Shown: in pieces, positions 1,171-37,840 of the stretch
How positions within the stretch are numbered: the first letter of the stretch is position 1
Layout: each line of letters begins with the position of its first letter
Source: Hydrolagus colliei
Lineage: Eukaryota
Assembly (NCBI GenBank): GCA_035084275.1
Contig: CM068745.1
Coordinates: forward strand, 82,770,001-82,834,000
Direction: 5' to 3'
Length of the DNA: 64,000 nt
The notes under the pieces: generated by a model
Told to the model about the DNA's origin: nothing
The model's input: the letters and a program-made list of their open reading frames with translations, nothing else
The model's database searches: none
Position numbers and translations under genes: made by a program

Positions 1171-1257
1171 CCGAGTGAATTCAAACCCGGTTGTTAGTCG
1201 ATTCCCAGATCCCCTTTTTCCTTTCAATCTACGACTGACCGGTTTGTGGGACACTAC

Positions 1258-5343: not shown

Positions 5344-5402
5344 TGTGCGAGATTTACAATTCGATCAAAGTTCTGTGTCTCAATGGAACTCTTTCCCATT
5401 AG

Positions 5403-5759
5403 GTGTTGCTGCCGGACTAAGACTTCTGCAATCTCCTTCCGAGGTTCATGCCTGCAGGCACCTGACTGCTGAGTTCAACTGCACTCTCCAACTCGACGGC
5501 AGATTGATAGAGAACCCCAGTTTTTATTGGCACATTATTAAACACGAATCTGCCGACAGGCAGACACGAATTAATATCAGTCAGGCAACAAGTGGTCAGT
5601 TCTCTGTGTTGAGTCCCAAAGCACCCAATTTCCACAGCGTTTTAAAGATCCGTGACCTTGACCTTGGGGACACTGGCGTTTATTACTGCAGTGTTATTAT
5701 CCACCAGCCTTCACGCACCGCACAGGTCACCGGCAACGGAAGCCAGCTTTTTGTTGAAG
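5403..5759 (+). CDS. Gene A exon 2: germline-joined VJ-type Ig V domain (NKp30/CD28-family/antigen-receptor-like)
   Basis: ttcccattag|GT ... GAA G|gtaagg, phase 1-1, 357 bp. Contains FNC, FYW, LKIRDLDLGDTGVYYC and a J-like G strand TGNGSQLFVE in the same exon. Confidence 0.9.
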
Positions 5760-6892
5760 GTAAGGTTTTGCAAGGCAGAGGTAGAGTTCGCCGAAGAAAA
5801 ACAGGTTTTTAAAGCGCTTGCATATTGTATTATATAGATTATTGTCACAGCACGCAAAAGAGGCATTTTTAGTTACACTTGTCCATCGCACGGTTTGGCG
5901 TAGAGGCCTGTAGCTCTGTGGTTAGAGCACTCACCCACCCACACAATCGGGTTCGATTCTCGACAAAGTTTCCTCCCTCCACACGGCTGATAATAATCAC
6001 ACACGCGCAAAAAAAAAATTTGGTCACTCAATCCACGACTGTTACTAGGCAATTGGCTGCCTCGTTTCACCCACAAATATACAGCCAATTCACTTTTTTT
6101 TTACAGTATGTTCAGTGAAGCGCTTTGCGACGTCCAGAAGATATGAAAAACGTGATATATCAAATGCAAGGATTGTTATTATTATGTACTATTATTATAG
6201 AGTCTACCTTAGGGTGATCCAGCCCTTTGAAAAATATAATGCTTAAGAATTGTACACAAATCCTAGATAAATGCTTTTATCTTCTCAGGCTGTAGATTTA
6301 TTGGAAATATTAAATTTCACCGGTTTATGAAGCTAAAATTACATACTTATAGATGGGTTTACTAATCTGATTGTCATGATATTTATTATAATAATAATAA
6401 TCTTTGTATTTGATATAGCGCTTTTTACATCTTATCGACGTCTCAAAGCGCTTCACAGAATATACCGTAAAGTGAATTGACTGTGTATGTATATATATAT
6501 ATATATATATGTGTGTGGACGAAACATAGCAGCCAATTGCGCACAGCAGTGTCCCCCACAAACAGTCATGGTTTGAAATGACCAATTTTTATTGTTGTGT
6601 TTTTTTGGGTGGGATTATTATTAGGCGTCTGTATGTGTATGTGGGGTGGGGTGGTGGGGGGGGGGATAAGGAAACCTGCCCAAGGTTTCACCCTGATCTG
6701 CCTGGATTTGAACCCAGGTCTCATGTTTGAAAGGCAAGTGCTCTAACCCACTGAGCTACAGAAGCTCCATGAAGCTCTGAAACACTGTCTGGTGTGGAGG
6801 GCGCTATATAACTTGTTGTTATTACTGCTGAAAAGTTAATGACTGAAATATTGTATATGAATAACTTACTATTAAAATCTGTTTACATATAG

Positions 6893-6934: not shown

Positions 6935-7258
6935 GTAAGCCCTTTCATTATGTTTCTTATTTAGATTCGATTTGCAATTAATACTTCAATTAACGGAATG
7001 CATGTGTGGTCTGATGAAGATTGTGTGTTGTGTGTGTGTGTGAGTTTCTGTGTGTANNNNNNNNNNNNNNNNNNNNNNNNNNNNNNNNNNNNNNNNNNNN
7101 NNNNNNNNNNNNNNNNNNNNNNNNNNNNNNNNNNNNNNNNNNNNNNNNNNNNNNNNNNNNNNNNNNNNNNNNNNNNNNNNNNNNNNNNNNNNNNNNNNNN
7201 GCTCCGGCACTGTTGAGCGCACTGACACATTAGACTGCGTAAAAAGTGCTACATAAGT

Positions 7259-10200
7259 ACGGGCTTTAAACTAATCCCGGGGGGTGAGGGTGGGAAACTG
7301 ATCAGTAGTTCAAATACGGGAGGGGTAATAAGGAGGACAGGGGTAAAGGGAAGACGGGAGAAAAATGCAGAGGAAGTAATTTGTGCCTTAGAGTGCATGT
7401 ATGTAAATGCACGAAGTTTGAGAAATAAAATTGGTGAGCTGCAGGCTCAGGTGGCTGCGAGGCGATATGATGTTATAGCAGTAACAGAGACTTGGCTCCA
7501 GCATAGGCAGGAATGGGAGTTGAACATTCCTGGTTATAATGTATTCAGGAGGGATAGAGAAGGGAGAAAAGGGGGCGGGGTGGCAATTTTAGTTAAGGAC
7601 TCAGTGACTGCCTTAGAAAGGAACGAGGTGGAAGAAGGACTAAAAACCGAATCTATCTGGTTAGAATTGAGGAATAAAAAAGGTGCAGTTACACTGTTAG
7701 GGGTATACTATAGACCACCAAATAGTGGGGAGGAGATAGACAAGCAGATCTGCAAGCGTATCACGGAGAAATGCAGAGCTAATAGAGTAGTGATAATGGG
7801 TGACTTCAACTATCCCAACATAGACTGGCAGAATAGTAGAGTAAAGGGCAAGGAGGGAGAAGAATTCCTGAAGTGTGTGCAGGACAACTTTCTTGATCAG
7901 TATGTTTCCAGTCCAACGAGGAAAGAAGCATTGCTGGATCTAGTTTTGGGAAATGAGGTAGGGCAAGTTCAACAGGTTTCTGTAGGTGAGCATCTAGGGA
8001 ATAGTGACCACAATATCGTTAGATTCAGAATAATTATGGAAAGGGATAAGGAACGATCACAGGTGAGGACATTCAACTGGAAAAGGGCTAATTTCAATGA
8101 GTTGAGGTGGGACCTAGCCAAGGTGGATTGGAAAGAAAAATTGGCAGGTAAGACAACTAACGAGCAGTGGGCAGCGTTCAAAGAGGAGATAGTTCAGGCA
8201 CAGGTCAAAAGCATCCCCACAAAGGTGAAATGTAAGGCATCCAAACCTCCCTGGATGACTAAGGAAATCGGGGCCAAAATAAAACAAAAAAAAGAGGCTT
8301 ATGATAAGTGTCAGGCTCAAAATTCAGAAGGGAACCAAGCAGAATATAGGAAGTGTAGGATAGAACTAAAAAAGGAAGTTAGAGGGGCAAAGAGACTGCA
8401 TGAAAAACAATTAGCGAGTAAGATTAAGGGGAACCCTAAGGTTTTTTACCAACATATTAAGAGTAAAAGGTTGGTCAAGGAGAGGGTGGGGCCAATTAGG
8501 GACCTAGGAGGAAATCTCATTGTGGAGGCAGAGGGCATGGCTGATGTACTGAATGAGTACTTCGCCTCTGTCTTCACAAAAGAAAAGGATACAGCCAATG
8601 CCATGGTATTAGAGGAGAGGGTAGGAGAAATGGATAGAATAATTATAACCAGAGAGGAAGTGCTAAAAAGGTTGACGTCGCTCAAGGTGGATAAGTCACC
8701 TGGTCCGGATGGGATGCACCCTAGGTTACTAAGTGAGGCACGGGAGCAAATAGCAGGGACTCTGGCCACGATCTTTCAATCTTCCTTGGACACAGGGGTC
8801 GTGCCAGAGGACTGGAGGATAGCTAATGTTACTCCCTTGTATAAAAAGGGGCAGAAGGACAAGTCTGGTAACTACAGACCAGTCAGTCTAACGTCGGTAG
8901 TGGGCAAACTTCTAGAGTCCATAATCAGGGACAAGGTAGATCTTCACTTAGAAAGATATAGGCTAATAAAGGACAGTCAACATGGATTTGTTAAAGGCAA
9001 ATCTTGCCTTACAAATCTGATAGAATTTTTTGATGAGGTAACGGAATGGGTGGATAATGGTAGCGCAGTTGATGTAGTTTACATGGACTTTCAAAAGGCA
9101 TTTGACAAAGTGCCACATGAGAGACTTATTATGAAATTAAAGGCCCATGGCGTAAAAGGGACAGTGGCAGCGTGGATCCACAACTGGCTGCGAGACAGAA
9201 AGCAGAGAGTTGTAGTGAGCGGCTGTTTTTCAGATTGGAGGGAAGTGAGCAGTGGTGTGCCACAGGGATCAGTTTTGGGACCATTGCTGTTTGTAATCTA
9301 CATCAATGATCTGGACTTGGGTGTACGGAGTACAGTTTCCAAGTTTGCAGATGACACTAAGTTAGGGAGAATAGTAAATAGTGAGGAGGATAGTAGCCAT
9401 CTGCAAGAGGATATAGACAAATTGGTAAAGTGGGCAGACACATGGCAGATGAAGTTTAATGCAGAGAAGTGTGAGGTGATGCATTTTGGGAGAAGAAATG
9501 AAGGGAGGCAATATAGGCTAGATAGTACAATTTTAAATGGTGTGAAGGAACAGAGAGACCTGGGGATTTGTGTTAGTGACTCGTTGAAGGTGGCAGGACA
9601 GGTAGACAAGGCTGTTAAGAAGGCATATGGGATACTAGGCTTTATAAATAGGGGTATAGAGTACAAAAGTCAGGAAGTGCTGACTAACCTCTATAGGACT
9701 TTGGTGAGGCCTCAGCTGGAATACTGTGTTCAATTCTGGTCACCACACTACAGAAAGGATGTGAAGGCATTGGAAAGGGTACAACGAAGATTTACTAGGA
9801 TGGTGCTAGGATTGAGGGACTTCAGCTATGAGGAGAGGCTAGATAGGCTAGGGTTATTCTCTCTGGAGCAGAGAAGATTGAGGGGAGACCTAATAGAGGT
9901 TTATAAGATCATGAGGGGTTTCGACAGGGCAAATAGAGAAAAACTATTTCCACTCGTGGGTGAATCTGTGACTCGTGGTCACAGATTTAAAATAGTTTCA
10001 AGGCGCAGTAGAGGGGAGCTGAGGAGAAATTTTTTCACTCAGCGAGTTGTTCGAATCTGGAATGCATTGCCTGAAAAGGTGGTGGAGGCTGATTCGATAA
10101 CAACTTTTAAAAGGGAATTAGATCTTTATTTAGGGAGAACGGGTCTATTAGGCTATGGGGAGCGGGCAGGGCAGTGGGATTGAATCGCTCTTTTCAAAGA

Positions 10201-13836: not shown

Positions 13837-15874
13837 ATATAACAACAACAACTTATAGAGCGCCTTTCCCGTCGGGAGGACGTCCCAAGGCGCTGCACAG
13901 GAGGCGTGTGACCCGAGCTGGGAGGGGAGTGTTTGGGAAGGGGTGAAACACGAAGGGGAGGTCGAAAAATTCAGGGGGGGAACAAAAGGCACGATCAAAG
14001 AGGAAAGTCTTCAAACCGGCTTGAAAGAGGAAAGGGAAGAAACAAGACGGACGGATTGGGGGATGGAATTCCATAGGGTGGGAGCGGAGAAACTGAAGGC
14101 CCGGCCTCCGATGGTGGGGCGGTTCGGGCGGGGGACTTGGCGGGTGGGCTTATAGGGGGAAAGTAAATCGGTTAAATAGGGCGGGGCAAGGCCATGTAAG
14201 GCCTTGAAGGTGAGGACGAGGATCTTGAACTCGATCCTCTGGAGGATGGGGAGCCAGTGGAGACGGGCGAGGGTGGGAGTTATGTGGTTGCGGAGGCGGG
14301 TGTGGGATAGTACACGGGCTGCAGAGTTTTGGATGACCTGCAGCTTGTGAATGGAGGAACTGGGGAGGCCGTCGAGGAGAGAGTTTCGGTAGTCCAGCCG
14401 TGAGGTGATGTACGCGTGCACGAGTGTTTCGGCAGCGTGGGGGGTGAGATAGTTGCGGAGCCTGGCAATGTTGCGCAGGTGGAAGTAAGCGGTGCCGGTC
14501 AAGGAGCAGATGTGGGGGAGGAAGGAGAGTTTATGGTCGAACATGATGCCGAGGTTCCTGATTGGCTTTGTGTGGTGGAGAGTGCAGCCTTGGATGTTGA
14601 GGCTGGCAGCGCCCGATGTGCGGAGGCGCTGGCTTGAGCCAATCAGGAGGGCCTCGGTCTTACTCACGTTCAATTGGAGGAAGTTGTCCCTCGTCCAGGA
14701 CTCAATGTCGGACAGACATGCTGTCAGAACATCGATGGTCTGGGGGTTGAGGGATGAGGCAGAAAGGTACAGCTGGGTGTCATCCGCATACATGTGGAAA
14801 TTTACCCCATGTTTGCGGATGACATCGCCCAGAGGGAGCGTGTAAATGGTGAAAAGGAGGGGGCCGAGGACAGAGCCCTGGGGGACTCCGTGAGAAACTG
14901 TGCAGGGGTTTGAGGAGAAACCGTTGGAAGAAACAAAATGTAGGCGGTGGGTCAGGTAGGAATGGAACCAGTCAAGGACTGTGCCTTGAAGGTTGAGGTG
15001 GGAGGAAAGACGTTGGAGGAGGATGGTGTGATCGACTGTGTCGAACGCAGCAGACAGGTTAAGGAGGACGAGGAGGCAGAGGGAGCCCTGGTCACAGGCG
15101 GTTAGGATGTCATTTGTGACCTTAACCAGGGCAGTTTCTGTGCTGTGGATAGGACGGAAACCTGATTGGAGGGGTTCAGGGAGTGAGTGATTTGAAAGGA
15201 AAGAGCGGTGCTGGGAGGCAACCACTCTTTCAAGGACCTTGGATAGAAACGGGAGGTTGGAGATGGGTCGGTAGCTTGATGGCTGCGACGCATCAAGGGA
15301 GGGTTTCTTCAGGATAGAGGTGATGGTGGCTGTTTTAAGGGAGGTAGGGACGGTGCCTGAGGAGAGGGAAAGGTTGATGGTGTCAGAGATGAGTGGGGCC
15401 AGGAGGTGGAGCTGGGTGCGGAGGAGGGGGGTGGGGATGGGGTCCAGTTAACACGTGGTGGGTTTCATGGAGGTGATTATTGGACTAAATTGATTATATG
15501 ACTAAAGGTGGGGATGAAAGTATGAAAAGGGGGGGTGGGTGGGGGTTGAAATAACGGATGGAGGGGCGGAGGTGGAGGAGAGGTGGGGGGAGGAAACCGC
15601 AGAGCGGATTCTCTCTATTTTGGACTCGAGGAAGTCCAACATCTCCTCGCAACATTCGTTTGAGGAGAGAATCTGCGAAGAGAGGCGGGGGGGGGGGGGG
15701 GGGCGGAGGAGCTGGTTGTTGGTGGCGAAGAGGAGGCGGTGGTTGTCCTTCGCTTCCAGGATTATCCTGGAGTAGAAGGCTGATTTGGCGGTGGCTAGGG
15801 CGGAGCGGTAAAATTTTATGCGGTCCAGCCAGATTTGCCGGTGGACCGTGAGGCCAGATTTGAGCCAGGTGCGT
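13837..15874 (-). mobile_element. L2 LINE, 5'-truncated, with RT ORF at 14011-15225
   Basis: [35 protein letters not shown]; (TTG)n tail; TCAGCA on both flanks (13831-13836 and 15875-15880). Confidence 0.92.
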
Positions 15875-22929: not shown

Positions 22930-22979
22930 TCAACCCATTTCGTTATCATGACTAAAATCCGGATTTGTCAAAGCTGATT
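22930..22979 (-). CDS. Gene C candidate cytoplasmic terminal exon
   Basis: tttttcatttag|AA, phase 1, (E)SALTNPDFSHDNEMG*. AATAAA lies about 230 nt downstream (near 22700). No homology support. Confidence 0.4.
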
Positions 22980-23625
22980 CTAAATGAAAAATAATGATAA
23001 TAATATTAATAATAACAGGCAGATGATTCACTGTGTTACTGCATTAATGCACATTCACGTTTCCTGGTCTGCACATTTCCTTAGTACTCAATGTGTTAGA
23101 TGTTTAGTGATAACACACGCCTAATAATAATAATAATCTGTCCCCCCGAAAACCCCCCACAATAATAAAAATTGGTCATTTTCAATCCACGACTGTTTGT
23201 GGGGGGGACGCTGCTGTGCGCAATTGGCTGCCGTGTTTCGCCCACAAAATACATATACAGTCAAATCACTTTACAGTATGTTCTGTGAAGCGCTTTGAGA
23301 CATCGATAAGATGTGAAAAATGCTATATCAATAATTACATTTATCAAATGCAAGGATTATTATTTTTATGTATAAAAGTCAGTGGGCGCTCAGACTGAAC
23401 GCTAAAACTTACAACTTTCTAAAAGTTTTTTTTTTTGTACATTAAACTACACTGGCTGTTTTTCGCTTCCCCGAGGCATGGCAGGCAGTGGTAGTGTAAC
23501 ATAATGTGGACAAGCAATGTTGTGCAGAAGATACCTCTTCCCTCCCACCTTCCTGAGTTAACACAAAGCTGACACTTAACCAGACTGACATAAATTCACG
23601 TTCGGTTGATGATTTTTATCAACCA

Positions 23626-23714
23626 CCCGGGTAGCAAGCCCATATGGACCCCACATGGGACAAATTGGTGTTGATCCATGACCATATGGGCCCCACATGG
23701 GCTTGCTACCTGGG
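23626..23714. mobile_element. Tiny palindromic MITE, CMC/EnSpm-like termini
   Basis: CCCGGGTAGCAAGCCCAT...ATGGGCTTGCTACCTGGG, flanked by CA on both sides. Confidence 0.6.
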
Positions 23715-23827
23715 CAAATTAGCATTAAGAAAAACAAATTAGCATTAAAAAAAATGAATTAAGGTATTGTATCATCTTTTGTTCCCCTTTCTTTGTCAGA
23801 TATATTTTGACCAGCTCTTTGCACCAA

Positions 23828-25128
23828 CTCATAAGAACATAAGAATTAGGAGCAGGAGTAGGCCATTCGGCCCTTCGAGCCTGCTCCGCCATTCAATAAG
23901 ATCATGGCTGATCTTCTCACCTAACTCTGATTACCTGCCCTATCCCCATATCCCCTAATCCCTCTATTTTTCAAAAATCTATCAGTCTCAGCCTTGAAAA
24001 TGTTCAACGACTGAGCATCTACAGCCTTCTGGGGGAGTGAATTCCATACATTCACTACCCTCTGAATGAAGAAATGTTTCCTCAACTCTGTTCTAAAAGG
24101 CCGACCCTTAATTTTAAGACTGTGACCCCTGGTTATAGATTCTCCTACCAGGGGAAACAGTCCCTCAGTGCCTACTTTATCCAGCCCTTTAAGAATCTTA
24201 TATGTTTCAATAAGATCCCCCCTAATTATTCTGTACTCCAGAGAATACAGCCCTAGTTTATTCAACCTATCCTCATAGGTCAGTCCCCTCATCCCAGGAA
24301 CTAACCTAGTGAATCTATGCTGCACCCAATCAAAAACTTTCCTTCCTCCCCCACATCCGCGCCTTGACCGGCACCGCTTATTTCCACCTGCGCAACATTG
24401 CCAGGCTCCGCAACTATCTTACCCCCCGCGCTGCCGAAACACTCGTGCACGCGTACATCACCTCACGGCTGTTCTACGGAAATTCTCTCCTCGTCGGCCT
24501 CCCCAGTTCCTCCATTCACAGGCTGCAGGTCATCCAAAACTCTGCAGCCCGTGTACTATCCCGCACCCGCCTCCGTGACCACATAACCCCCACCCTCGCC
24601 CGTCTCCACTGGCTCCCCATCCTCCAGAGGATCGAGTTTAAGATCCTCGTCCTCACCTTCAAGGCCTTACACGGCCTTGCCCCATCCTACCTAACCGATC
24701 TACTCTCCCCCTACACGCCCACCCGGACCCTCCGTTCAGCAGGACTTGGCCTGCTCCAAGCCCCCCGCCCGAACCGCCCCACCATCGGAGGCCGGGCCTT
24801 CAGTTTCTCCGCTCCCACCTTATGGAATGCCATCCCTCAATCCCTCCGTTTCGTCTCTTCCCTTTCCTCTTTCAAGGCCGGTTTGAAGACTTTCCTCTTC
24901 GATCGTGCCTTTTGTTCCACCCCAAACTCTTTTACCTCCCCTTCGTGTTTCACCCCTTCCCAAACACTCCCCTCCCAGCTCGGGTCACACGCCTCCTGTG
25001 CAGCGCCTTGGGACGTCCTCCCGACGGGAAAGGCGCTATATAAATGTAATTTGTTGTTGTTGCACCCCCTCTAAGGCAAGTATGTCCTTTTTTAAATAAG
25101 GAGCCCAAAACTGCACACAATACTCGAG
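23828..25128 (-). mobile_element. Second CR1 family 3' fragment, split by an L2 insertion
   Basis: EYCVQFWAPYLKKDILALEG | VQHRFTRLVPGMRGLTYEDRL continues across the L2; (TTCTTATG)n-type tail. The same family 3' end is at about 1955-2100 (+). Confidence 0.85.
24328..25060 (+). mobile_element. Young L2 3' fragment inserted in CR1
   Basis: Near-identical to 13837-14520; TGCACCC target duplication (24321-24327 and 25061-25067). Confidence 0.9.
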
Positions 25129-26015
25129 GACATACATCTTATGTGTGTCAGAGAGCTTGGGGGACAGCTACAACAACAACAACAACAGTAACATCGAAAT
25201 TACACTTGTGTAGTGGCTTTCACATCGGGAGGACGTCCCAAGGCGCTAACTCTACAACTCGATTCCCCTTCCCTCCTTCAGTCCATCAAATCACCGCTGG
25301 ACGCCAACCATTCAGGAACTGCCTGGTTTGGGATCATTGCAGAAATATGCTGGTGACTGACTGACTGACTGACTGGATGACTCTCGCCCCTAGTCAAGAT
25401 CTAACTAACCACAATTCGCTTCAGATGAGTGAGAGCACTGGACATGTTACGCTACAGCAGTGACTTGCACCCATCCGGGCAGCCATGTCCTCGTGTTTAA
25501 TTATATATAGACCTTTCATATCATCAACACCGACTGATCTACTTTCACAATTGGAAACCTCAGCGACGTTGCTTTAAACCACACAAAGGATCTGGGTCAT
25601 GTTTTTTCTTGGTGTGTTGGTTGGTTTGGAGAGAGCCGTTATTGTCAAGCGGTTATTTTTGTGTTTTTCAGCCAGTTTTGTTGTCTCGCTCTCGCTCTCG
25701 CTCTCTCGTACCAAACAAAAGAGCTCCTGCGGCTCAGTGGTTAGAGCGCTCGCCTTACAAGAGAGACCTGTGTTCGAATCCAGGCAGGTCAGGGCGAAAC
25801 CTTGGGCAAGTTTCCTTACTCCACACATACACACACACACACGCACACGCACACGCCTGCTAATAATGCCTCCAAAAAAACAATAATAAAATGGGTCATT
25901 TTCAATCCACGACTGTTTGTGTGGGGGACTCTGCTGTGTGCTATTGGCCGCCGCCCACAAATATATATTTCACCCACATATATATATATATATATACAGC
26001 CAATTCACTTTACAG

Positions 26016-26367
26016 CATCAAAACACAAAATACTACAGACGCTGGGAATCTGAAACAAAACCAAAAGTTGCTGGGGAAACTCAGCAGGTCAAGCAGCATC
26101 CATGGAGAGAGGAAAAGGAGTCAACATTTCGGGTCGACAACCCTTCGTCAGGACTGGGGCTTGTTTGGAGGGAAAGGTTTCTTAAAGACGTTAAAGGCAA
26201 AAACTCCCTTCCTTGTCCTGCCTCTCTCCCCTTTAATGTCCTTAAGAAATCTCTCCCTCCAAACAAGCCTCAGTCCTGACATAGGGTTGTAGACCCGAAA
26301 CGTTGACTTTTTTTCCTTTCTCCATGGATGCTGTTTGACCGGCTGAGTTTCCCCAGCAACTTTTGTT
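26016..26367. mobile_element. Penelope-like fold-back element inserted into a SINE
   Basis: Two inverted arms of about 150 bp; 12-bp duplication TTCACTTTACAG (26004-26015 and 26368-26379); hammerhead-type cores in each arm. Confidence 0.75.
26119..26155 (-). ncRNA. Minimal type-I hammerhead ribozyme motif
   Basis: AGTC-CTGACGA-A-GGGT(tgtcg)ACCC-GAAA-TGT-T-GACT; stems I and II pair and the core is conserved. Confidence 0.55.
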
Positions 26368-26484
26368 TTCACTTTACAGTAGATTCTGTGAATCGCTTTG
26401 AGACGTTGATAAGCCGTAAAAAAGCTGCTGTAATCAAATGCAAGGATTATTATTATTAATAAGAGGCAATTAATTTGGACGCAC

Positions 26485-26589
26485 CTTTCCTGCGTGCAAT
26501 GGCGTATACGATCTCTCCCAGTAATAGCACAAGCCACAGAGATACCACAGCCAGGCAGCGAACAAGGAAGATGGCAAGGTATCCGTTTC
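26485..26589 (-). CDS. Gene C transmembrane exon with intramembrane Arg and Glu
   Basis: ttcactctatag|GA ... AGG AAA G|gtgcgt, phase 1-1, 105 bp. (G)NGYLAIFLVRCLAVVSLWLVLLLGEIVYAIARRK. Confidence 0.8.
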
Positions 26590-29038
26590 CTATAGAGTGA
26601 ACAATAAGAACGCTTTGATAAAGCTGCTTTTCACGTCAGGAGAGTGTCTTTAAACTCCTCACACAGTTGTCTGGGAACCTGAAATTGGATATTAAGGGAG
26701 TTTTGGAGGGTGTGGGGGGCGTTAAGTGGGAGAGTAAAGGATGGAGGTAAGGCTGAGAGACACTGGGATGGTTGTGGAGTGAGCTATAAGGTGTTAGTCG
26801 ATTGGCAAACCGCTTTCCTGGGGGTAATAATCCCCATTTTTAAAAAATAAACAAAATTGGTCACTCAATCCCCGACTAGTTTTGTGGGTCAATCGGCTGC
26901 TGTGTTTCGCCCACAAAATATACAATTCACTTTACACTATATTACGTGAAGCGCTTTGAGACGTCTCAACGACTGTGATGAGCTGCTATGTCAAAGGCAA
27001 AGTTTTTTTGATTATCAAGGAGAACAGATAGCTCATATGGGCTATAATGGAATAGTAAATAATCTAGGTAGTTGAAACACTGTATACATGTACAAAACAC
27101 AACTCATAATATAAGGAAAACTGATGTGGATTCATTTAAAATCTTCTATTTTTTATAAATGGATTATATTTATGAACCCCCGCACGACACACACACACAC
27201 ACACACACAGCCACGCACACGCACACAGACACCNNNNNNNNNNNNNNNNNNNNNNNNNNNNNNNNNNNNNNNNNNNNNNNNNNNNNNNNNNNNNNNNNNN
27301 NNNNNNNNNNNNNNNNNNNNNNNNNNNNNNNNNNNNNNNNNNNNNNNNNNNNNNNNNNNNNNNNNNNNNNNNNNNNNNNNNNNNNNNNNNNNNNAATAGT
27401 GCATCCAGTAGGTCAGTTAATTCCGTTGAAGTGAAATTCACTTCTCAAAAGACCAAACAATTGATGGGTATTGATAGTAGAAAGTCACTGCTGAAAGACA
27501 GAGCTGTGAAGACCTTTTTTTTAGTCTGAAGTATATAAAGCCACGGACACTAACATTTGAAACGTGTGCCTGGCAAGCTTCCAGTGTTTGCCCAGCTCAG
27601 CCATGACTCTGGAAATCTCACCAAACTAATTATTCTTAGTCTATTTGCCTTAAAATTTTAAATCGTATAAATGGTATGTATGTGTGTATGTGTGGGGGTG
27701 GCGGGGGGGGGGTTGCTGATCAGGGTGGTGGAGAGAGGGAGTGAAGTTTTTGGAAAATATTTAAAGTATTGTGGACTAATAATAATCCTAAAAAAAATCA
27801 CAAAACTAAAATTGGTCATTCTAATCCACGGCTGTGTGTGGGGGGGGCGGGGGGGGGGAACGCTGCTGTGCGCAATTGGCTGCCGCGATTCACCCACAAA
27901 TATACCGTCAATTCACTTTACAGTATATTCTATGAAGCGCTTTGGGACGTCGATGAGATGTGAGAAGCGCTATATCAAATGCAAGGATTATTATTATTAT
28001 TATTATTATTATTAAAAGCAATTTCCAAATAATGGCTTAAAACTGAAGTGTTTTTTTCTACCATTCTGCTATAACTTCCATTTGAAGGCAGGTTAGGTCT
28101 GACGGGCTAATATATTCCCATATAATGTTTTGTATAAAGTAACTGCAATAAAATATTTATTGTTTTGCCCAAACATGACTGAGTGAGCCTGCACAATACA
28201 GTCAATAAATACACTTGACAGTGTATACTATAAAAAAAGGAAAATATTTATCTTTACTTCTTACAAAATATACAAGAACATTTATTATTTTATCTGACAT
28301 ATAAGGAGCTATAAAAATGCAAGGATTATTATTTATTACTAAATTTTTTACTGTAGATGCTGAGAGTATTTGATGTGATACTTAGAATCAGAGACTGCCT
28401 ATTTATTATTTTACACTATTTGCTGCAATTGACACCATTTTAAAATCTGAACATCGCACATTGGATTTTATAGATCCGCCAATGTACGTGAATTGTGTTA
28501 TATAGTTATAGATCCACCAACCTAGCAGCAAACATCACTGTCAGTGTGATATTTACATGTTATATATGTGCGCTTGCCTTGTTTCGCTTACTATTTGGTA
28601 AATACAGTCAATTCACTTTACAATTATATTATATATATTACATTATATTCTGTGAAGCGCTTTGTGATGATGTGATAAGGCGCTATATCAAATGCAAGTA
28701 TTATTACTTATTCTTCTTATTGATATCTAACACAAAAATAATTAGCCATACAAACATTGTATTTATTGTTTGATAAAACTGGGATTTGTGTTGGTTAATC
28801 AGAGGCAATAAATTATCGAATTTAATCGCCTCCTTATTACAAGATTAAAACCTGTAATATATCGTTCTTTTTCAATCCACGACTGTTTGTGTGGGGGGGT
28901 GGGGGGGGGGGGGGGTCGCTGCTATACACAATCGGCTCTTCCACAAATATATACAGCCAATTCACTTTACAGTATATTCTGTGAAGTGAAAAGCCGCTGC
29001 ATCAGATGTAAGCGAGGATTATTATTAATATGACTTAC

Positions 29039-29338
29039 CCGGGTTGAAACTGATCCTTTTGCTCACTGGTGGGTTGAGGGTGATGTGCTGAACCTGACAG
29101 GTCACAGCTTTGCCCAGTTCCCAGTCAGAGGTTTGGATCCTCAGCCGTGAGCTCAGCCTGAAGGTCCCATTGCTGTTCACTGTGAGAGACGTGGGCTCTG
29201 TTTCATAGGGTCCATCTCCCTCCACCGTCCAGGAAACGTTCAGATCTCTTGGGAAAAATCCCTCGGCCACACAAGTCAGGGTCTGATTCCCAGAGGCTTC
29301 ACTCTCCGGATCAGCAAAGAGATGGACTTGGGGTTTGG
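29039..29338 (-). CDS. Gene C Ig C1-set domain exon
   Basis: tttattttatag|CC ... CCG G|gtaagt, phase 1-1, 300 bp. LTCVAEGFFPRDLNVSW, NSNGTFRLSSRL and VTCQVQH are C1-set hallmarks. Confidence 0.9.
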
Positions 29339-29718
29339 CTATAAAATAAACAATTATCTTATAGATAAAGCAACTCACGTTAGACGCAGAAATGTCAGAG
29401 TATTGTTCGACACTTGCACTTATCAAGCAGTGACTCTGGCCCACTTCAGTTGCTAATCTCCACCACAATATATATGTTCATTGACATCGGAAGCCTGACA
29501 GCAAAGATAGCTAAAGCTAAAGGTGTAAATGTCTGATTGCCTTCCACGCTTTTAAATAACGTTTCTTTTTCTGTCACAAAACCCCCCCCCCAAACCAAAC
29601 ACATGAAAGAGACCCCAGAAATCTCAACATCAACTGAACACTCTCGCTCTATCCCCACATGCGGGGACCTCGAGAGGGAACTAGTGAACTACACGTAGAA
29701 ACGGCAATGAATCTGTGA

Positions 29719-29918
29719 NNNNNNNNNNNNNNNNNNNNNNNNNNNNNNNNNNNNNNNNNNNNNNNNNNNNNNNNNNNNNNNNNNNNNNNNNNNNNNNNNN
29801 NNNNNNNNNNNNNNNNNNNNNNNNNNNNNNNNNNNNNNNNNNNNNNNNNNNNNNNNNNNNNNNNNNNNNNNNNNNNNNNNNNNNNNNNNNNNNNNNNNNN
29901 NNNNNNNNNNNNNNNNNN
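29719..29918. other. Assembly gap (N)
   Basis: N run. Other gaps at 7057-7200, 17747-17901, 27234-27394 and 30908-31540. Confidence 0.99.
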
Positions 29919-30641
29919 GTAATCCTTGCATTTGATATAGTGCTTTTCACATCTTATCGACGTCTTATAAATCTAAGTTGTTATAGCGCTTCACAGAATA
30001 TACTGTAAAGTGAATTGATTGTATATTTGTGGGCGAAACGCGGCAGCCAATTGCACATAGCAGTGTCCCATATACAGTCGTGGATTGAAAATGACCAATT
30101 TTTATTGTGTTTTTTTTGGACGGATTATTATTAGGCGTGTGGAGTAAGGAAACTTGCCCAAGCTTTGGCCCTGATCTTTATTAACATAATAATCCTTACA
30201 TTTGATATAGTGATTTTCACATCTTCTGGACATCTCAAAGCACTTCACAGAATATACTGTAAAGTGAATTGATTGTATATATGTGGGTAGCCCACGGCAG
30301 CCAATTGCGCACAGCAGTGTCCCACAAACAGTCTTGGATTGAAATTACCAATTTTTTTTTTTTTTAACCCAGGTCTCATGCTTGTTAGGCAAGTGCTCTA
30401 ACCACTGAACTACACATCAGCTTTAGTTTGATATCACTGTGATATGGGTATGTGAAGGCAGACATATCTGTTATTCTGAGCTACAGGACTCCTCAAAGAT
30501 ATCTAACCACTGCGCCTCAACCAGGGGAAAGCAAGCTGAATAACCATACCCCAAATTCACATCTCATGAGTTTCATAATTTAGTAATGTTAGTGTCAAAT
30601 GTTAGTTAAAACTCCAAACCTCAACAACCTCCATATAACTA

Positions 30642-31705
30642 CCGTAAATACCCGCGTATAAGGCGCACTTTTTTTCACGGCGGAAGATCTCGAAAGTTGG
30701 GGGTGCGCCCTATACGCAGGTACAATAAATTTTGAGCCTCGGAAATAAGCAGGAGAGGCGGCCGGCGCCCTGTCAGCCGGGCTTTGGACACCGTGTCCGG
30801 CGGCGGTTGGGGGGAGCGGGTGATGGGGCTTCGGCCTCGGCCGCCCGGGCAGTGGCAGCAGCAGTGGACTTCAGTGCTGTGCCTGCTGCCTGCCTTCTGC
30901 CAAACCCNNNNNNNNNNNNNNNNNNNNNNNNNNNNNNNNNNNNNNNNNNNNNNNNNNNNNNNNNNNNNNNNNNNNNNNNNNNNNNNNNNNNNNNNNNNNN
31001 NNNNNNNNNNNNNNNNNNNNNNNNNNNNNNNNNNNNNNNNNNNNNNNNNNNNNNNNNNNNNNNNNNNNNNNNNNNNNNNNNNNNNNNNNNNNNNNNNNNN
31101 NNNNNNNNNNNNNNNNNNNNNNNNNNNNNNNNNNNNNNNNNNNNNNNNNNNNNNNNNNNNNNNNNNNNNNNNNNNNNNNNNNNNNNNNNNNNNNNNNNNN
31201 NNNNNNNNNNNNNNNNNNNNNNNNNNNNNNNNNNNNNNNNNNNNNNNNNNNNNNNNNNNNNNNNNNNNNNNNNNNNNNNNNNNNNNNNNNNNNNNNNNNN
31301 NNNNNNNNNNNNNNNNNNNNNNNNNNNNNNNNNNNNNNNNNNNNNNNNNNNNNNNNNNNNNNNNNNNNNNNNNNNNNNNNNNNNNNNNNNNNNNNNNNNN
31401 NNNNNNNNNNNNNNNNNNNNNNNNNNNNNNNNNNNNNNNNNNNNNNNNNNNNNNNNNNNNNNNNNNNNNNNNNNNNNNNNNNNNNNNNNNNNNNNNNNNN
31501 NNNNNNNNNNNNNNNNNNNNNNNNNNNNNNNNNNNNNNNNCTGCCTGCCTGCCTCCCTCTCTCCCTACCTACCTGTCTCTCCTCCCTCCCTCCCTTCTGC
31601 CGGCAATATCATCGAAAATGCTTCTGTTTTTTTTCACCAAGAAAAGGTCAAAAGTGGGGGGGTGCGCCTTATACGCGAGTGCGCCTTATACGCGGGTATT
31701 TATAG
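30642..31705. mobile_element. Tc1/mariner-superfamily MITE spanning an N gap
   Basis: TIRs CCGTAAATACCCGCGTATAAGGCGCAC and GTGCGCCTTATACGCGGGTATTTATAG, with TA on both sides. Confidence 0.8.
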
Positions 31706-34700
31706 TACTCACTCCTTTTTACACCCCTACTGTTCCATGTGACAATGTTACCAATTGTTCACACTTTGGAAGTTTGGAAACATAAAACCCTCATCTTCAC
31801 TCTTGTTCAGACTAAATAATAATAATATCCCTTGCATTTGATATAGCGCTTTTCACATCTTCTAGACATCTGAAAGCGCTTCACAGAATACCCTGCAAAG
31901 TGAATTAACCGTATATTTGCGGGCAAAATGCGGCAGCCAATTGTGCACAGCAATGTCCCACAAACAGTCGTGAAATTACCAATTTTCTTGTTATTTTTAG
32001 CGATTATTATTAGGCGTGTGGAGTAAGGAAACTTGCCCATTTAATGTTTATTTTGTGGACAAAACGCAGCTGCCAATTATTGTACATAACACACTCCCAT
32101 AAAGTCATGGGCTGAGTGACCAAATTATTCTCAATTTTTTTTAGGGGGATTATTAATACCCCTGGAAAGCAATCCACTATTCAGCTAATAACCATGTTGC
32201 TACTTATTGCTTAGTAATCAGGCGTGTGGAGTAAGAAAACTAACTAAGGTTTCACCCTGCCCAGGAATAAAGACTCCCAATAGGGCATTGAATCCATTAA
32301 CTCCCGGAATTTAAATGGCTTGTTAGGCATTATTTGGTAACCACTCTGAGATGCCAAAAAGGTGGCTTTTATGGGAAATGGAGATTCATAGTTTGATGTC
32401 ACCATTAAAAGCAACTCCCGTGAGTTTCAACTCCGGTTTCTTCTGCAGTGCCTCTTTCACAGGAATATTAGGTGCAATGCTAAAAATAGATCTTTGTGTT
32501 TAGTGGGCTTGAGGAAGAGTGTGTTTACACATTGCTGTTTGGATTGTAGCCTTTTTTCTGCCAAGGTTGGAAGAACAAAGCATACTGCACTGAACCCAGC
32601 TGCTCATCCACTACCGCAGTCCACTGTGCTACATTGCTGGGGTCATGAATGTTTCTTTCAAACCATATGCAATGGATGTGTTAATTCTAATTGTCACAAT
32701 TGTAGAAAACTTTTAACAAAACATGTGAAACATTGAATGGGGGGTGGGGGGAGAAATAGAAATGATGATTGTCCGAGGAGCTGCAGGGTCCCGGTTGTAA
32801 TTAACATACTTCTTTAGCATCTTTTATATATTGAATTACCCATCTGCTTTGCTGTACTAAATCCTTAATTAACTGGGAGTGGACGTTGTAAAGTCATTAC
32901 CAGGACTGGTAGTATAAGTAGCAATCTGGCCAAGTAACATTTGTTTTAAATGTGAGAAATAATTATTGCTCAAATGGAGTGGGTGCAAGAAAATCCATCC
33001 TTGATTATTCTGCAAAAGAAGATAGATGAACAGAGATTTCAGGACATTTCATTCATGTTCTGGTTGGCATGGATACCTATTTGAGACTTTAAAGGCGATA
33101 ATGATGGTGTTAGTTTCACAAGAAAGTGATTTTTGATTTGTTGTTCATCTGGCTATGGATTATAAAATACTGAACTGCTGAACTTGTGTTTGCTGTTTCA
33201 ATAACAGATATTAAACTTTCATCTATTATCTGTTTTGCCAGCTAGTCAACAGTGTTTAAGAGAATGCACAAATAGTGTCCAGTAACATTTCAATGTGCCA
33301 CCTCAGTCTGGAGTCCGATTCATTCGCTGGAAATATTAGAACCCTGTTAACATGACAGTTGAGGTCCATAATATACCAACCCATTACTATAATGGGATGT
33401 AATTGTTGTTTGGTGGTTTTAGGTTCACTGGTCATGTGTGCAGAAAAATAAAGTTTGTTGTTTAACCCTAACAAAATAATTTGTTTCCTGGTACTTTTAA
33501 CTGACCAGGCATGGAAAGACATACTACTACTACTAATAATCCTTGCATTTTAATATTGTGCTTTTCACGTCTTCTAGACATCTCAAAGCACTTCAGAGTA
33601 CACTGTAAAGTGAATTGACTGTATATTTGTGGGTGAAACTCATTGGCAGCCAATTGTGCACAGCAGTGTCCCAAAATCAGTCGTGAGTTGAAATGACCAA
33701 TTTATTATTTAATTTTTAGGGATTAGAGAAATTTGCCCGAAGTTTCACCCTGCCTGGAATTGAACCCAGGTTTCTCGTTTGTACGGTGAGTGCTCTAATC
33801 ACTGAGTTACAGGACTCCACATCAGCTTCAGTTTGATATCACTGTGACGTGGGTGTGTGAAAGGTAGACATCGCCAATAATTTAAAAAAAATTATAATTG
33901 AATCTTTTTTTACTTGCCAACACTGTAATTGTTTACTGTTGGCTCTTTTAGCTTGAAGATTAATTTAAAAGAATAAAGTGACAACCTGCATTCACTTATT
34001 TTAGCAGATGGGCATTTCCTGTGATTTATCCCTCAACAGTTAATTGGGAATTACTCCAATTGGGATCTTACCAAAATAACCGAATCAAATCTGTATACAG
34101 TGCCATACATCCAGCAATAATAACTTAGAAACTGCCTGCTTTCACTATGTATACACTGTATTTTATTTTTCTCATGAGATACATTCTTACTGGTATGAGA
34201 AGATTTTAGAATTTGTTGTAAGCACTTGGTGCTATTTCAGATTATTTGAATGCTTGACTTCCTTTTCTGATCATAATTGCATTCATCATCAGAGCCACAT
34301 TATGGCCTGTTTTTCAGTGAAATGACTTGGTTTATAATTGTGAGATTGAAGGATCATTTTTTATGGTTCTCTTCACAGTGAATAGTGAAGCAGTTTTTCA
34401 GTTTAAAAAGGGAGCTAACTGATGGATGCTACAGATGCTTCATGAAATTAGAATATTGTTTGATTATCTTACTGTATATGATGATTCAAAGTGCTCATTG
34501 GAACTGAGATTATTTTGTCATTGGCACTTTAAAATACTATTTAATTATCAATCTTGTTTTCCCCCATAACATAACACTTAGTTATGGGTCATTGAAAAAA
34601 ATCATGTAATTTGTTTCTGCTGTTTGTTCCAGCAAGTGAGCTAGACTTAAATAAAGATGAGATTTGATAAGGAACATTCCAACTAATGGGACTATTTGAT

Positions 34701-35869
34701 AGCAAAATGGAGCATTTTCACAATATGAGCAAAGCCAGTCTATAAATTCCAGTCTGCTGGTAGCAATGGCACTGCGCTATCACTGGTTCAATGGATGAAT
34801 GCTCAAGCATTGGTTATCTAAATGATTTAGGTTTTTGTTCTGTCAGATTGCACTCTTGCACTCTGGATAGTTATGTTTACTGACCTCCAGCTTGTTCATA
34901 AAAGCTAGCTCATTTAGAGATCAAAGAAGGAAAAAATTCTGTCCAGCAATGTCTCCATACAGTGAAAATTTGATCTTGGTTAAGCTTCCAGGAGAGGGTT
35001 AAATACAAAAATAATGAGAAAACCAGAGGGTGAATGAGATCAAGAAAGATTCAGTCAGTGAAAAAATATACAAGCTGTATTTTAGATTGCTATGTTTTTG
35101 CCAACATTTTTAAAAGTGTAAATGCATTGATCAATAGATTTAAATTCATGGTTGACTTAGAAGTCCATTTTTGACAATGGTTCAACAACCTGACACAAAT
35201 ACATGTTGAATTAAATAAAATATCTAATATATAATATTATTTCTTGTATTAGATATGTGTGATTGAAAACATTGTTTTGATTTTCGTATTGGAGAGAAAA
35301 CATAATGAGAGATTGAATCTTGAATCCAGACAACAAAACAACAAACAACAACAACATTACAATTCTAAGAGCACCTTTCACGTCAGGAGATGTCCCAAAT
35401 CTTTATATCTCTTTTAAAGTCAACATTCTGTTTTTTATATATTACAGTTGTGTGATTGGGCACTGAAATGACTCAGTGTTTAAACTTATTTTATCGTACA
35501 AGCGGAAAGCATTTCAGGTTTAATAGCCTGCCTGCTCTGGGTTAGCTGACCTTTGCTAGAGCAGTGGTAAGAGTGCTTATTTGGCATCGGGATACCCAGA
35601 TGACAGAGGAGAAATATTAAATCGGATTCATATTTCTACTAACTGCCCAATGACCCATGATGGAAAGTCCTATGTGTCCTTGTTGAGTGAGGAATGAATT
35701 GGGCTTGGCTTCGATAGCCTGACAGCCAACGAGTTGCTGACACAAATACATGTTGAATGACCTTTTGAATAAAGGTACGGGAGCGATGTTCATATCTATG
35801 AGCCAGATGAATGATGAACGTTAATAGCACCTGTAATGTCATAACCTCTCAAAGCGCTTAATGGTGATA

Positions 35870-36310
35870 TTCATAGATTCATAGAATTTTACGGCACAAA
35901 AGGAGGCCATTCGGCCCATCTAGTCTGTGACGGCTCTTTGAAAAGAGCGATTCAATCCCACTGCCCTGCCCGCTCCCCATAGCCTAATAGACCTGTTCTC
36001 CCTAAATAAAAATCTAATTCCCTTTTAAAAGTTGTTATCGAATCAGCCTCCACCACCTTTTCAGGCAATACATTCCAGATTCGAACAACTCGCTGAGTGA
36101 AAAAAATTCTCCTCAGCTCCCCTCTACTTCGCTTTGAAACTATTTTAAATCTGTGACCACGAGTCACAGATTCACCCACGAGTGGAAATAGTTTTTCTCT
36201 ATTTGCCCTGTCGAAACCCCCCATGATCTTATAAACCTCTATTAGGTCTCCCCTCAATCTTCTCTGCTCCAGAGAATAACCCTAGCCTATCTAGCCTCTC
36301 CTCATAGCTG
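35870..36310 (-). mobile_element. CR1 3' fragment, near-identical to the full copy
   Basis: Encodes RGDLIEVYKIM...GERAGQWD and carries the tail. Confidence 0.9.
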
Positions 36311-37840
36311 TTACACACAATGACTCTTTTGTCTGCAAGTGCAGTGGGTCTGAAAAAATTAACATTAAAATTATTGGACATGACACCTGGAGAAACTTCA
36401 TTAAATGAGAGATCTTTAACATCCAGCTGAAGAACATTCCGATGGAATCTTGGTTTAGCCTTTTGTCCAACGGATGAAACCTTCAACAATACGTTACTGA
36501 ATGGAGCATCAGGCTGTGTTTGACTGAACCCCAAACCAATTTAGGCTTGAACTTGACCCAGAAACAATCGTGCTACTGACCGAATCAGGTTGACGGATAA
36601 GCAATCCAAGATGAGAGAGAAGTTTTGAGTTGAAGAGCTTCAAAATAATTGATTATGAATACATATTCTGTACCTGACTACAAAATTTGTAATTTGAATC
36701 CATCAAATCAACTTTTAACATGAGTAATCTGGTAACAACAACATAATTTGAATTTTCTGTGAGTTACCTTGCCATTTTTAAAATCTGGCTAATTTGGTGT
36801 AATCTGTAAATTGTCATGCAATTTGTTTTATTTTGTATGTTAAAGTCTACCAGGTATTGTACGCTGAGGGTTTGTAACTTCTTAATAGCAGCTTTGATAA
36901 CACTGCAGAAATAATTAAACTACATGCTTTAATTAAGATATTGAATTATAAATATTTTCTTCATACCGTACAGTAGTGTAGCTTCAGCTGTCATCACTTG
37001 ACTCATTACAACAGTAGAAAGTAATAAGCTTTCTGCTATTTTTCACCAAAACTAGAATCATTTTTAATTGATGTGACTTTTTAAACAGTATTTTTTGCAC
37101 TTTTCAAAGTGAGAATCAGTGTGCAAAACAACCTTACATTGAACTTATTGACCCTAAATAGATGAATGAGAATTGATGATTTTAAAATAAATTGTCGTTT
37201 GTAGATTATGTGGGGGATAGGGGGGAAAATGGACTGTATTTGCAAACTACTGTATCGCTTATGCGAATAGCATATTAATCAAGTACTGTGAGTTGTGATC
37301 AGGTATTAGGATGTTGCTGTTTACTACAATTATGCCACAGAAAATCATTTAAGTGAATCTTAGTTTAGCTGAACTGGAGTTCCCTGGATTATTCCCTGCA
37401 TGAATAATGAATTAACTGTCTGCAAGTACAGTATTGTGCTCATACTCAAATATTGTATTACGCATATGTAGGTAGATATTGGATCAATTATTTCAGCAAT
37501 ATGAACTTGGCTATAGAAGAAAATGTATGTTTCATGATGTGCACAGTAAACACAATTGAAAGCATGGACTTGCTGTTCAGCTGGCGTATTTTGCTCGCTC
37601 GTTGTGAATCGTTGGCACATTGAAGAATTAGCTTCTTGCTTAATTCTGCCGTACTAATGACCTTGTGCAGTGTAACAATTCATTTGAGAGGAGACGAGTG
37701 TTTGAAACACATTAGGTTGTACACAAGAGAAGATGCACAACTGGCTAATTGTTTCAGGTGGATTGTCAGCCAAATCTATGTACTGTATATTGTACTTAGT
37801 CAGCCGTCACGTAAAGAATTTAATGTTTTTGCATTTTTAG

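Follow-up and report, generated by a model that had tools for sequence, protein, structure and literature searches.

What kind of gene is represented by a C1-set immunoglobulin exon that is followed by a charged transmembrane (TM) exon and has neither a V exon nor a leader in view? The question is raised by gene C, whose exons lie on the minus strand of the window (the whole 64-kb stretch of DNA that we analysed). The features on which the argument turns are collected in Table 1.

Table 1. Positions in the window of the exons of gene C, of the gaps and of the sequence around them.
Feature	Position	Strand	Details
Candidate last coding exon, weakly supported	22930..22979	-	encodes ESALTNPDFSHDNEMG and a stop (22932-22930); phase-1 acceptor with pyrimidine tract
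Transmembrane exon	26485..26589	-	105 nt, phase 1/1; AG 26591-90, GT 26484-83; encodes GNGYLAIFLVRCLAVVSLWLVLLLGEIVYAIARRK
Assembly gap in C1-to-TM intron	27234..27394		adjoining (GT)n run; flanks colinear with C. milii
C1-set immunoglobulin domain exon	29039..29338	-	300 nt, phase 1/1; Pfam PF07654, PDB matches, splice sites (AG acceptor 29340-39 after pyrimidine tract; GT donor 29038-37)
Sole readable DNA upstream of C1 exon (V-to-C1 intron)	29339..29718	-	380 bp; aligns to C. milii L001 10364-10038, up to contig end
Gap at contig end, expected place of VJ and leader exons	29719..29918		380 bp upstream of C1
Repeat-only stretch, junction zone of IgSF block and MAN1A2	29919..32312		multi-copy SINE/TE matches only
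Second gap, within element bounded by terminal inverted repeats (TIR)	30908..31540		arms 30640-30669 and 31678-31707

The C1-set domain and its relatives

An earlier note had recognized the C1 exon by its GFFP, LNVSW and CQVQH motifs, and this reading holds: the translation matches the Pfam C1-set profile PF07654 over profile positions 1-85 of 86 with an E-value of 1.5e-19 and a score of 70.6 bits (the gathering threshold is 21 bits). C1-set domains have been defined by exactly 13 residues from the B-strand Cys to the C-strand Trp, by (F/Y)(F/Y/H)P opening the BC loop, and by xVxH following the F-strand Cys (Hatherley 2009, PMC2785349). All three features are present in gene C, which has 13 residues in C-VAEGFFPRDLNVS-W, FFP and CQVQH. 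Among the best 60 PDB matches are constant domains of Ig, IgY and UrIg2, with Ig CH3, IgY and UrIg2 scoring best. The C1-set domain of gene C is genuine, and its exon is the only C1 exon in the whole window. Outside antigen receptors and MHC molecules, such domains are found in only a small number of relatives, the SIRPs for example (PMC2785349 among other sources).

In a protein search, the only close relatives of the gene C C1 domain were proteins of C. milii. One of these, P0001, has a C1 domain 72% identical to that of gene C and is built as VJ (FTGNGTDLRIQ), C1, TM and a tail with the motifs VYYATV and TEYAAL. Full-length orthologs of P0001 with the same architecture occur in six elasmobranchs (P0005-P0013; Heptranchias, Mobula, Heterodontus, Stegostoma, Hemiscyllium and Scyliorhinus), where they were automatically named SIRP-alpha-like or SIRP-beta-like. 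(The automatic annotations of P0001 and P0005-P0013 read 'tyrosine-protein phosphatase non-receptor type substrate 1-like', 'SIRP beta-1-like' and 'Ig kappa light chain-like'.) The architecture of this cartilaginous-fish family is leader-VJ-C1-TM-tail with tyrosine motifs, and in the full-length relatives the leader and the VJ exon, with its J-like G-x-G-T-x-L, lie 0.64-1.2 kb upstream of C1 (0.9-1.16 kb in sharks). With the C. milii copies the C1 domain of gene C shares 70-74% identity, with the shark and ray orthologs 48-59%. A C1 tree that took in family members only, with no outgroup families, likewise places gene C as sister to three C. milii copies with 100/99 support, the shark and ray orthologs falling outside. 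Gene C also has the family motifs GFFPRDLN(V/I)SW and VTCQVQH, and it is like the family in its exon phases, in the very short length of its stalk and in a TM exon some 105 nt long. On these comparisons, the C1 domain of gene C is that of a chondrichthyan SIRP-like VJ-C1 family. The term SIRP-like refers here to resemblance in sequence and leaves orthology to SIRP aside: the V-C1 ectodomain of the family aligns contiguously to d1-d2 of SIRP-alpha (2wng; 81 bits) and of SIRP-gamma (75 bits), and the alignment to SIRP-alpha is at least as good as that to Ig light chains. The proposal that gene C is an antigen-receptor-precursor-like VJ-C1 gene is thus upheld as regards a VJ-C1 family, but the family is described here as SIRP-like, a term that leaves a relation to PRARP aside.

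The membrane anchor and the 3' end

The C1 and TM exons join in phase 1, as the earlier note had claimed, and the junction reads ...ISFNPG followed by NGYLAIFLVRCLAVVSLWLVLLLGEIVYAIARRK. The hydrophobic run of the TM is 29 residues long, with an Arg in its outer third, a Glu close to its inner end and RRK directly after it. Both charges had been placed in the membrane; this stands for the Arg, which is clearly within the span, whereas the Glu, given the length of the hydrophobic run, may lie at the boundary with the cytosol. Between the window and the C. milii ortholog the TM exon is 84% identical in DNA, and a 17-residue TM core, RCLAVVSLWLVLLLGEI, shows 4 synonymous differences but no amino-acid change (p about 0.008 for this conservation, the statistic having been picked post hoc). 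In the shark genes the TM exon, as deduced from residues present in P0005 but absent from isoform P0009, is 108 nt long and is like the 105-nt exon of gene C in size, phase and position.

We consider it quite unlikely that this hydrophobic exon instead provides a signal or signal-anchor for gene B, the B7-like gene downstream, or that genes C and B are one transcription unit, the C1 exon then having no membrane anchor of its own. The C. milii NCBI model LOC121848858 (P0004) does join the TM exon with the gene B V exon, and is the only annotated protein with the gene C TM, but this chimeric model starts in intronic sequence and has the C1 exon in the wrong frame, and is therefore a poor one. 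The leader of gene B looks degenerate in both species (MASFCAVKHYNS and a stop in the window, the ATG lost in C. milii; the leader of the neighbouring B7-like gene, for comparison, is MAFLSCVVLSLIILIAG), and all these exons are in phase 1, every combination being in frame. However, neither species has an in-frame ATG in the ORF of the TM exon, and RRK at its position would, by the positive-inside rule, act as a stop-transfer signal and favours a type I orientation. Moreover, V(B) is further from the exon than C1 is (in C. milii, 1.9 kb as against 1.0 kb), and the exon fits the family TM exon in size and phase.

The 3' end of gene C is one that we infer. The earlier note had implied a last exon at 22979-22930, with an AATAAA nearby at 22700, but this exon is no more than a candidate: several other last-exon candidates are phase-compatible, and the C. 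milii ortholog has no counterpart of it. Alternatively, reading through the donor of the TM exon would give ...RRKGASKLIASY and a stop. The window contains no tail exons with tyrosine motifs like those of P0001 or P0005, and the tail of gene C is apparently short. Typical members of the family have an uncharged TM and a long ITIM/ITSM-like tail, whereas gene C has a TM with Arg and Glu and shows no exons of such a tail in the window; it is therefore a variant and not a typical member.

The contig end and the missing upstream exons

Colinearity with C. milii L001 extends over positions 202 to 29718 of the window, from the 3' end of a TRIM45-like gene to the region upstream of C1, and makes this stretch the positional ortholog of the C. 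milii block between TRIM45 and MAN1A2. (That L001 might be a mere paralog was dropped after comparison of the flanks and with an intron substitution divergence of about 15%, gaps excluded. Nesting of the IgSF block in a MAN1A2 intron was also rejected: as in C. milii, the left flank of the window continues with the TRIM45-like gene, and the C. milii MAN1A2 locus has no IgSF exons.) The MAN1A2 genes of the two species have introns that are 80-83% identical and differ in 2 of 345 residues, which shows that the window belongs to a holocephalan distinct from C. milii. In C. milii, VJ-C1 family genes and MAN1A2 share one chromosome-scale record, and the same linkage, judged from equal record size, is found in Scyliorhinus, Heptranchias and Heterodontus.

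The earlier note had seen neither V nor leader and had placed the 5' exons of a non-rearranging VJ-C1 gene in an assembly gap. Indeed, there is no V-like or leader-like ORF on the minus strand from 29339 to 37600, but the readable DNA stops after 380 bp. The gap that explains the missing V is the one at the contig end, beyond the stretch from 22930 to 29338 described as gene C, and not the one between the C1 and TM exons. The latter is estimated at 161 nt, which is too short for an Ig exon; it is intronic and is therefore crossed by no reading frame, and the corresponding intron of the C. milii ortholog, with flanks in the same order and on the same strand, is 1.0 kb long, gap-free and without an extra Ig exon. 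Upstream of C1, the C. milii ortholog has a VJ exon 0.64 kb away, which is 354 nt long and ends 317 bp past the position matching the edge of the contig-end gap. Because the contig ends so close to C1 and the VJ exon of the relatives lies further upstream, the V-less appearance of gene C is best explained as an effect of the assembly. These observations support the idea of a VJ-C1 gene that has lost its 5' exons to a gap.

Unique colinearity with C. milii resumes at 32313, within MAN1A2 intron 3, and about 112 kb of C. milii sequence, including MAN1A2 exons 1-3, is unrepresented between 29719 and 32312. To judge from this alignment, the sequence missing at the contig end is probably far more than 200 nt. 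For those who use this locus, the practical message is that the scaffold misrepresents about 112 kb and that gene C probably owes its V-less look to the assembly. (A V exon concealed in the second gap was considered and rejected, as this gap is flanked by the 30-nt inverted terminal repeats of one element, with arms that are 93% complementary; two separate copies of the element may, however, have been joined there.)

Also present in the window are a V exon of B7 type and a VJ exon. The VJ exon, at 5399-5764 on the plus strand, was rejected as the V of gene C, being on the opposite strand, 24 kb away and on the wrong side; C. milii has the same layout and, in addition, its own VJ exon upstream of C1. 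A relation to B7H6/NKp30 was also rejected, since the relatives of the C1 domain bear J-like VJ domains and not B7 V domains, and no match to NKp30 was obtained with the plus-strand VJ exon.

The earlier note had also raised the alternative that gene C is truly V-less, with a leader spliced directly to C1 and a charged TM; it would then encode a surrogate or invariant partner chain that, like pre-TCR-alpha, pairs with another receptor chain, encoded away from the TCR and Ig loci, in a B7 neighbourhood that is MHC-paralogous. No V can be seen, the basic TM residue is as in pre-TCR-alpha, and the normal partner of a C1 domain is a second C1 domain (Hatherley 2009, PMC2785349). Against this, the absence of the V coincides exactly with the contig end, the ortholog and all relatives have a VJ exon at the expected distance, and the 380 bp available hold no leader-like ORF. 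In addition, the best matches are Ig CH3, IgY and UrIg2 for the C1 domain and SIRP for the family ectodomain, with no pre-TCR-alpha match to either among the best 60. Nothing speaks positively for this alternative, and we give it very little credence.

Constraint, likely function and comparison with known receptors

The C. milii ortholog of gene C is recently broken: its VJ exon is degenerate, with an in-frame stop and the second Cys lost, and a 1-nt indel shifts the TM exon out of frame with C1. The gene must therefore be dispensable in at least one chimaera. It is accordingly conceivable, though rather unlikely, that gene C itself is a recently dead or dying duplicate with a degenerate or deleted VJ, and that its C1 and TM exons are an unexpressed relic without disabling mutations as yet. 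In C. milii, adjacent genes of the block likewise have a degenerate look (a stop in VJ(A), a lost Cys in V(B)), SINE and LINE insertions crowd the introns of the window copy, and no protein models with the gene C C1 exon were found. However, the reading frames of both exons are open, none of the four splice sites and none of the canonical C1 residues has been lost, and the C. milii frameshift is lineage-specific. Moreover, the coding sequence of gene C has a single indel in 402 nt between the window and C. milii, when about 12 would be expected (Poisson P about 8e-5; the expectation comes from 26 gap openings per 865 aligned intron columns), and on the window lineage there are none, compared to about 6 expected under neutrality (P about 0.003). 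The dN/dS ratio between the two species is 0.45 (Fisher p 0.0025). There is thus selection against frameshifts in the exons of gene C. Note that the dS of C1 (0.32) is larger than the substitution divergence of the introns (about 0.15); this may point to gene conversion in C. milii and complicates arguments from rates.

Taken together, the sequence comparisons make it probable that gene C is the C1 and TM 3' portion of a non-rearranging, activating-type SIRP-like VJ-C1 receptor gene of a chimaera, with the leader and VJ exons beyond the contig end; we infer that the VJ exon is intact in the real genome. In paired-receptor families, the activating partner has a charged TM and a short tail. An Arg in the outer third of the TM together with a short tail would fit this usual design, and gene C has an Arg inside its TM and an inhibitory relative, P0001, with a similar ectodomain. 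The VJ domain would bind ligand, the C1 domain would be a spacer or a dimerisation module, and the buried Arg would, by analogy, recruit an Asp-bearing ITAM adaptor of the FcR-gamma/CD3-zeta or DAP12 type, on which surface expression might depend. There is, then, a conserved SIRP-like VJ-C1 family in cartilaginous fishes, beside B7-like genes near TRIM45 and MAN1A2, which in chimaeras seems to include a charged-anchor variant besides the tyrosine-motif form. Should the charged-anchor variant be functional, VJ-C1 receptors in activating and inhibitory pairs would have existed at the base of jawed vertebrates.

As assembled, gene C resembles pre-TCR-alpha (PTCRA) in having a C1-type domain followed by a TM with basic residues, but PTCRA is V-less by design, whereas the missing V of gene C coincides with an assembly break and its relatives carry a VJ. 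With UrIg/UrIg2, PRARP and NKp30 the family shares a germline-joined VJ and an immune-gene neighbourhood, and UrIg2 is among the best PDB matches of the C1 domain; UrIg, however, is antibody-like with several C domains, and NKp30 has no C1. Non-rearranging VJ-C1 genes are discussed as relics of the antigen-receptor precursor (PMC2785349 among other sources).

Mammalian SIRP-alpha and SIRP-beta are like the family in that a VJ-type V is followed by a genuine C1 and inhibitory members have tyrosine motifs. The family differs from them in having one C1 rather than two (a recent internal duplication in Mobula is the exception) and in its neighbourhood of TRIM45, B7-like genes and MAN1A2, which we take to correspond to human 1p13-p12, an MHC-paralogous region, and not to the SIRP cluster. 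Gene C itself, as a putative activating member with a basic TM residue and a short tail, resembles SIRP-beta with DAP12, although its TM has Arg and Glu in place of the single Lys of SIRP-beta.

Exons of gene C and the family of its C1 domain

The DNA of the window is of vertebrate origin and is interrupted by five N gaps. The in-phase splice from a C1-set exon to a TM exon described in the earlier note for gene C, a minus-strand gene fragment, is real and far beyond chance: the C1 exon, which translates as KPQVHLFADPESEASGNQTLTCVAEGFFPRDLNVSWTVEGDGPYETEPTSLTVNSNGTFRLSSRLRIQTSDWELGKAVTCQVQHITLNPPVSKRISFNP, matched the Pfam C1-set profile with an E value of 1.5e-19, and the splice signals and phase are intact. 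C1 domains are told from other Ig sets by a Cys-Trp spacing of 13 residues, FFP, and CxVxH (PMC2785349), all three of which are present, and PDB matches were to the constant domains of Ig, IgY and UrIg2. The TM exon reads G-NGYLAIFLVRCLAVVSLWLVLLLGEIVYAIARRK, that is, a hydrophobic run of 29 residues and then a basic stop-transfer cluster; its Glu may sit where the membrane meets the cytosol instead of inside the bilayer. The further exon proposed at 22979-22930 does have a good acceptor and an AATAAA downstream, but it is without a counterpart in the ortholog and has competing candidates.

Features of the window and their coordinates
Feature	Position	Strand	Description
C1 exon (gene C)	29338-29039	minus	300 nt; pyrimidine tract + AG (29340-39) before, GTAAGT (29038-) after
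TM exon (gene C)	26589-26485	minus	105 nt; AG and GT intact; phase 1 from C1
Flagged gap	27234-27394		within C1-to-TM intron, beside (GT)n run
Gene B	17191-~16850, 16106-16059, 13330-13181	minus	B7-family V exon, small exon, TM exon
VJ exon	5399-5764	plus	intact, germline-joined; …DTGVYYCSVIIHQPSRTAQVTGNGSQLFVEG; opposite strand from gene C
Retroelement ORFs (LINE/RT-like)	7226-10180 (+), 14014-15447 (-)		985 aa, 478 aa
TIR-bounded element	30640-31707		30-nt inverted terminal repeats (TACCGTAAATACCCGCGTATAAGGCGCACT), G+C-rich interior, gap 30908-31540 inside
MAN1A2 (mannosidase IB), GH47 exons	37807-63816	plus	exon 4 onward

A protein search with the C1-TM region of gene C yielded just four proteins, each of them from Callorhinchus milii. 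One of these, P0001 (72% identical), has the layout ...DSDTYYC...FTGNGTDLRIQ-C1-uncharged TM-long tail, with the tail motifs VYYATV and TEYAAL. Full-length orthologs of P0001 in six sharks and rays read leader-VJ-C1-TM-tail, carry the tail motifs LHYASV, TEYAVLKV and SVHYSTV, and have been named automatically by NCBI as SIRP-alpha-like, SIRP-beta-1-like or Ig kappa-like. The ectodomain of one such ortholog, P0005, aligns in one stretch to SIRP-alpha d1-d2 (2wng, 81 bits) and to SIRP-gamma (75 bits), a match at least as good as that to Ig light chains. A tree of the family's C1 domains placed gene C next to three C. milii copies as their sister (100/99), the elasmobranchs branching outside. Gene C is a real, incompletely assembled, charged-anchor variant member of a SIRP-like VJ-C1 family that is already present in automatic annotation; we found no description of this family in the literature searched.

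Several observations concern other family members. In the Mobula birostris ortholog P0006 the C1 domain occurs twice in tandem, the two copies being 89% identical, so its SIRP-like three-domain layout arose through a recent duplication inside the gene. In C. milii P0014, an unrelated V domain, CD2/SLAM-like by eye, is followed by the TM and tyrosine-motif tail that P0001 also has, which would suggest that exons were shuffled within the cluster. Among themselves the three C. milii C1 copies (L001 10367-10663, P0001 and P0002) show 88-89% identity, against 70-74% with the positional ortholog in the window; because they are closer to each other, and because the C1 dS (0.32) is above intron divergence, the sequences suggest gene conversion among the C. 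milii C1 exons.

Neighbourhood of gene C and its missing V exon

Window 202-29718 corresponds colinearly to a C. milii locus, L001 (MU249835.1, 12.24-12.27 Mb), with which it shares the order TRIM45-like 3' end, opposite-strand VJ exon, gene B, hydrophobic exon, C1 exon. Given this order and an intron substitution divergence of ~15% (gaps excluded), L001 is the positional ortholog of the window block. In C. milii, MAN1A2 is on the same scaffold, with L001 70-95 kb upstream of it; MAN1A2 itself differs between the window and C. milii at 2 of ~345 residues, and its introns are colinear and 80-83% identical. These differences show that the window belongs to a holocephalan other than C. milii. The 3' part of the C. 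milii TRIM45-like gene (RING, B-box, filamin) is matched uniquely at window ~200-1900 (+). The gene order, TRIM45 / IgSF block / (B7-like) / MAN1A2, is reminiscent of the human order, TRIM45-VTCN1-MAN1A2.

The earlier note had inferred that the 5' exons of gene C most likely fall in an assembly gap. The contig does break upstream of C1, and the relatives do carry a VJ exon, but the relevant gap is 29719-29918. The gap at 27234-27394 is intronic, so that no reading frame crosses it; both of its flanks are colinear with the orthologous locus in the same order and strand, its estimated 161 nt are too few for an Ig exon, and the gap-free C. milii C1-to-TM intron (1.0 kb) holds no further Ig-like ORF. 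In sharks, 0.9-1.16 kb separate C1 from the VJ exon upstream of it; in C. milii the distance is 0.64 kb. Alignment of the window to L001 ends exactly at 29718, the edge of the gap, and the VJ exon would be expected to start ~317 bp past this point and to span ~354 nt, too large for 200 N. On the far side of the gap the sequence consists of SINE/TE copies alone plus a second gap, the one set between 30-nt inverted terminal repeats, and unique colinearity with C. milii restarts at 32313, within MAN1A2 intron 3. MAN1A2 exons 1-3 and a B7-like gene seen in C. milii are absent from the scaffold, and in total ~112 kb is unrepresented relative to C. milii, skipped in a junction zone (29719-32312) at two gaps that have repeats only on their flanks. 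Since MAN1A2 is otherwise intact, this loss is an assembly discontinuity, and it points to a misjoin in the junction zone or to gap lengths set far too low there. The absence of a V exon at such a contig edge is therefore what the assembly predicts and is no evidence for a V-less gene; that gene C is truly a V-less chain, as had been entertained, is highly improbable.

Functional state of gene C and its neighbours

The C. milii ortholog of gene C is disrupted: a stop codon interrupts the frame of its VJ exon, where the second Cys has also been lost, and because of a 1-nt indel its TM exon no longer shares the reading frame of C1. (NCBI model LOC121848858, P0004, translates the C1 exon in the wrong frame and joins gene C exons to those of gene B.) The copy in the window has open exons that join in frame. 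Within 402 coding nt the two species differ by a single indel, located in C. milii, when ~12 are predicted from the gap-opening density of the introns (26 per 865 columns; Poisson P ~8e-5, or ~0.003 for the window lineage alone). The dN/dS of the coding exons is 0.45 (Fisher p 0.0025), and the 17-residue TM core, Arg and Glu included, is identical in the two species despite four synonymous changes, a post hoc observation. Judging from the indel deficit, dN/dS and TM core identity, selection has acted on the exons of gene C over most of the period since the two chimaeras diverged. That gene C, like its C. milii ortholog, is a relic, only recently dead, we consider unlikely, though it deserves some weight.

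Gene B, a B7-like gene downstream on the same strand, has a V exon whose best PDB match is CD276 (1e-15), with MOG and VTCN1 also matched; it has no C-domain exon. The C. milii gene B V has lost its first Cys. An upstream leader-like remnant (ATG at 17346, MASFCAVKHYNS*) appears degenerate in the window and in C. milii alike, which favours the idea that the hydrophobic exon assigned to gene C instead serves gene B. However, that exon has no ATG, its hydrophobic run is followed by RRK, and it matches the family's TM exon, making its use by gene B improbable.

The VJ exon at 5399-5764 is distantly related to the family V (28% identity, E 6e-10 to P0005); in the PDB its TCR/Ig V matches are weak and NKp30 was not matched. 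In C. milii its counterpart is interrupted by an in-frame stop. The window VJ exon is not followed by a C1 exon, and a gap (7057-7200) and a LINE lie directly downstream. Many copies of one SINE family (…AATAATCCTTGCATTTGATATAGCGC…) occur throughout the window's introns, and positions 1-1300 are a low-complexity tract.

A putative paired system

Receptors that use Asp-bearing ITAM adaptors for signalling are marked by an Arg in the outer third of their type I anchor together with a short tail. With its Arg anchor and putative short tail, gene C would be predicted to signal through such an adaptor; beside a relative with an inhibitory tail, this design suggests a paired activating/inhibitory system resembling SIRP-beta/SIRP-alpha.
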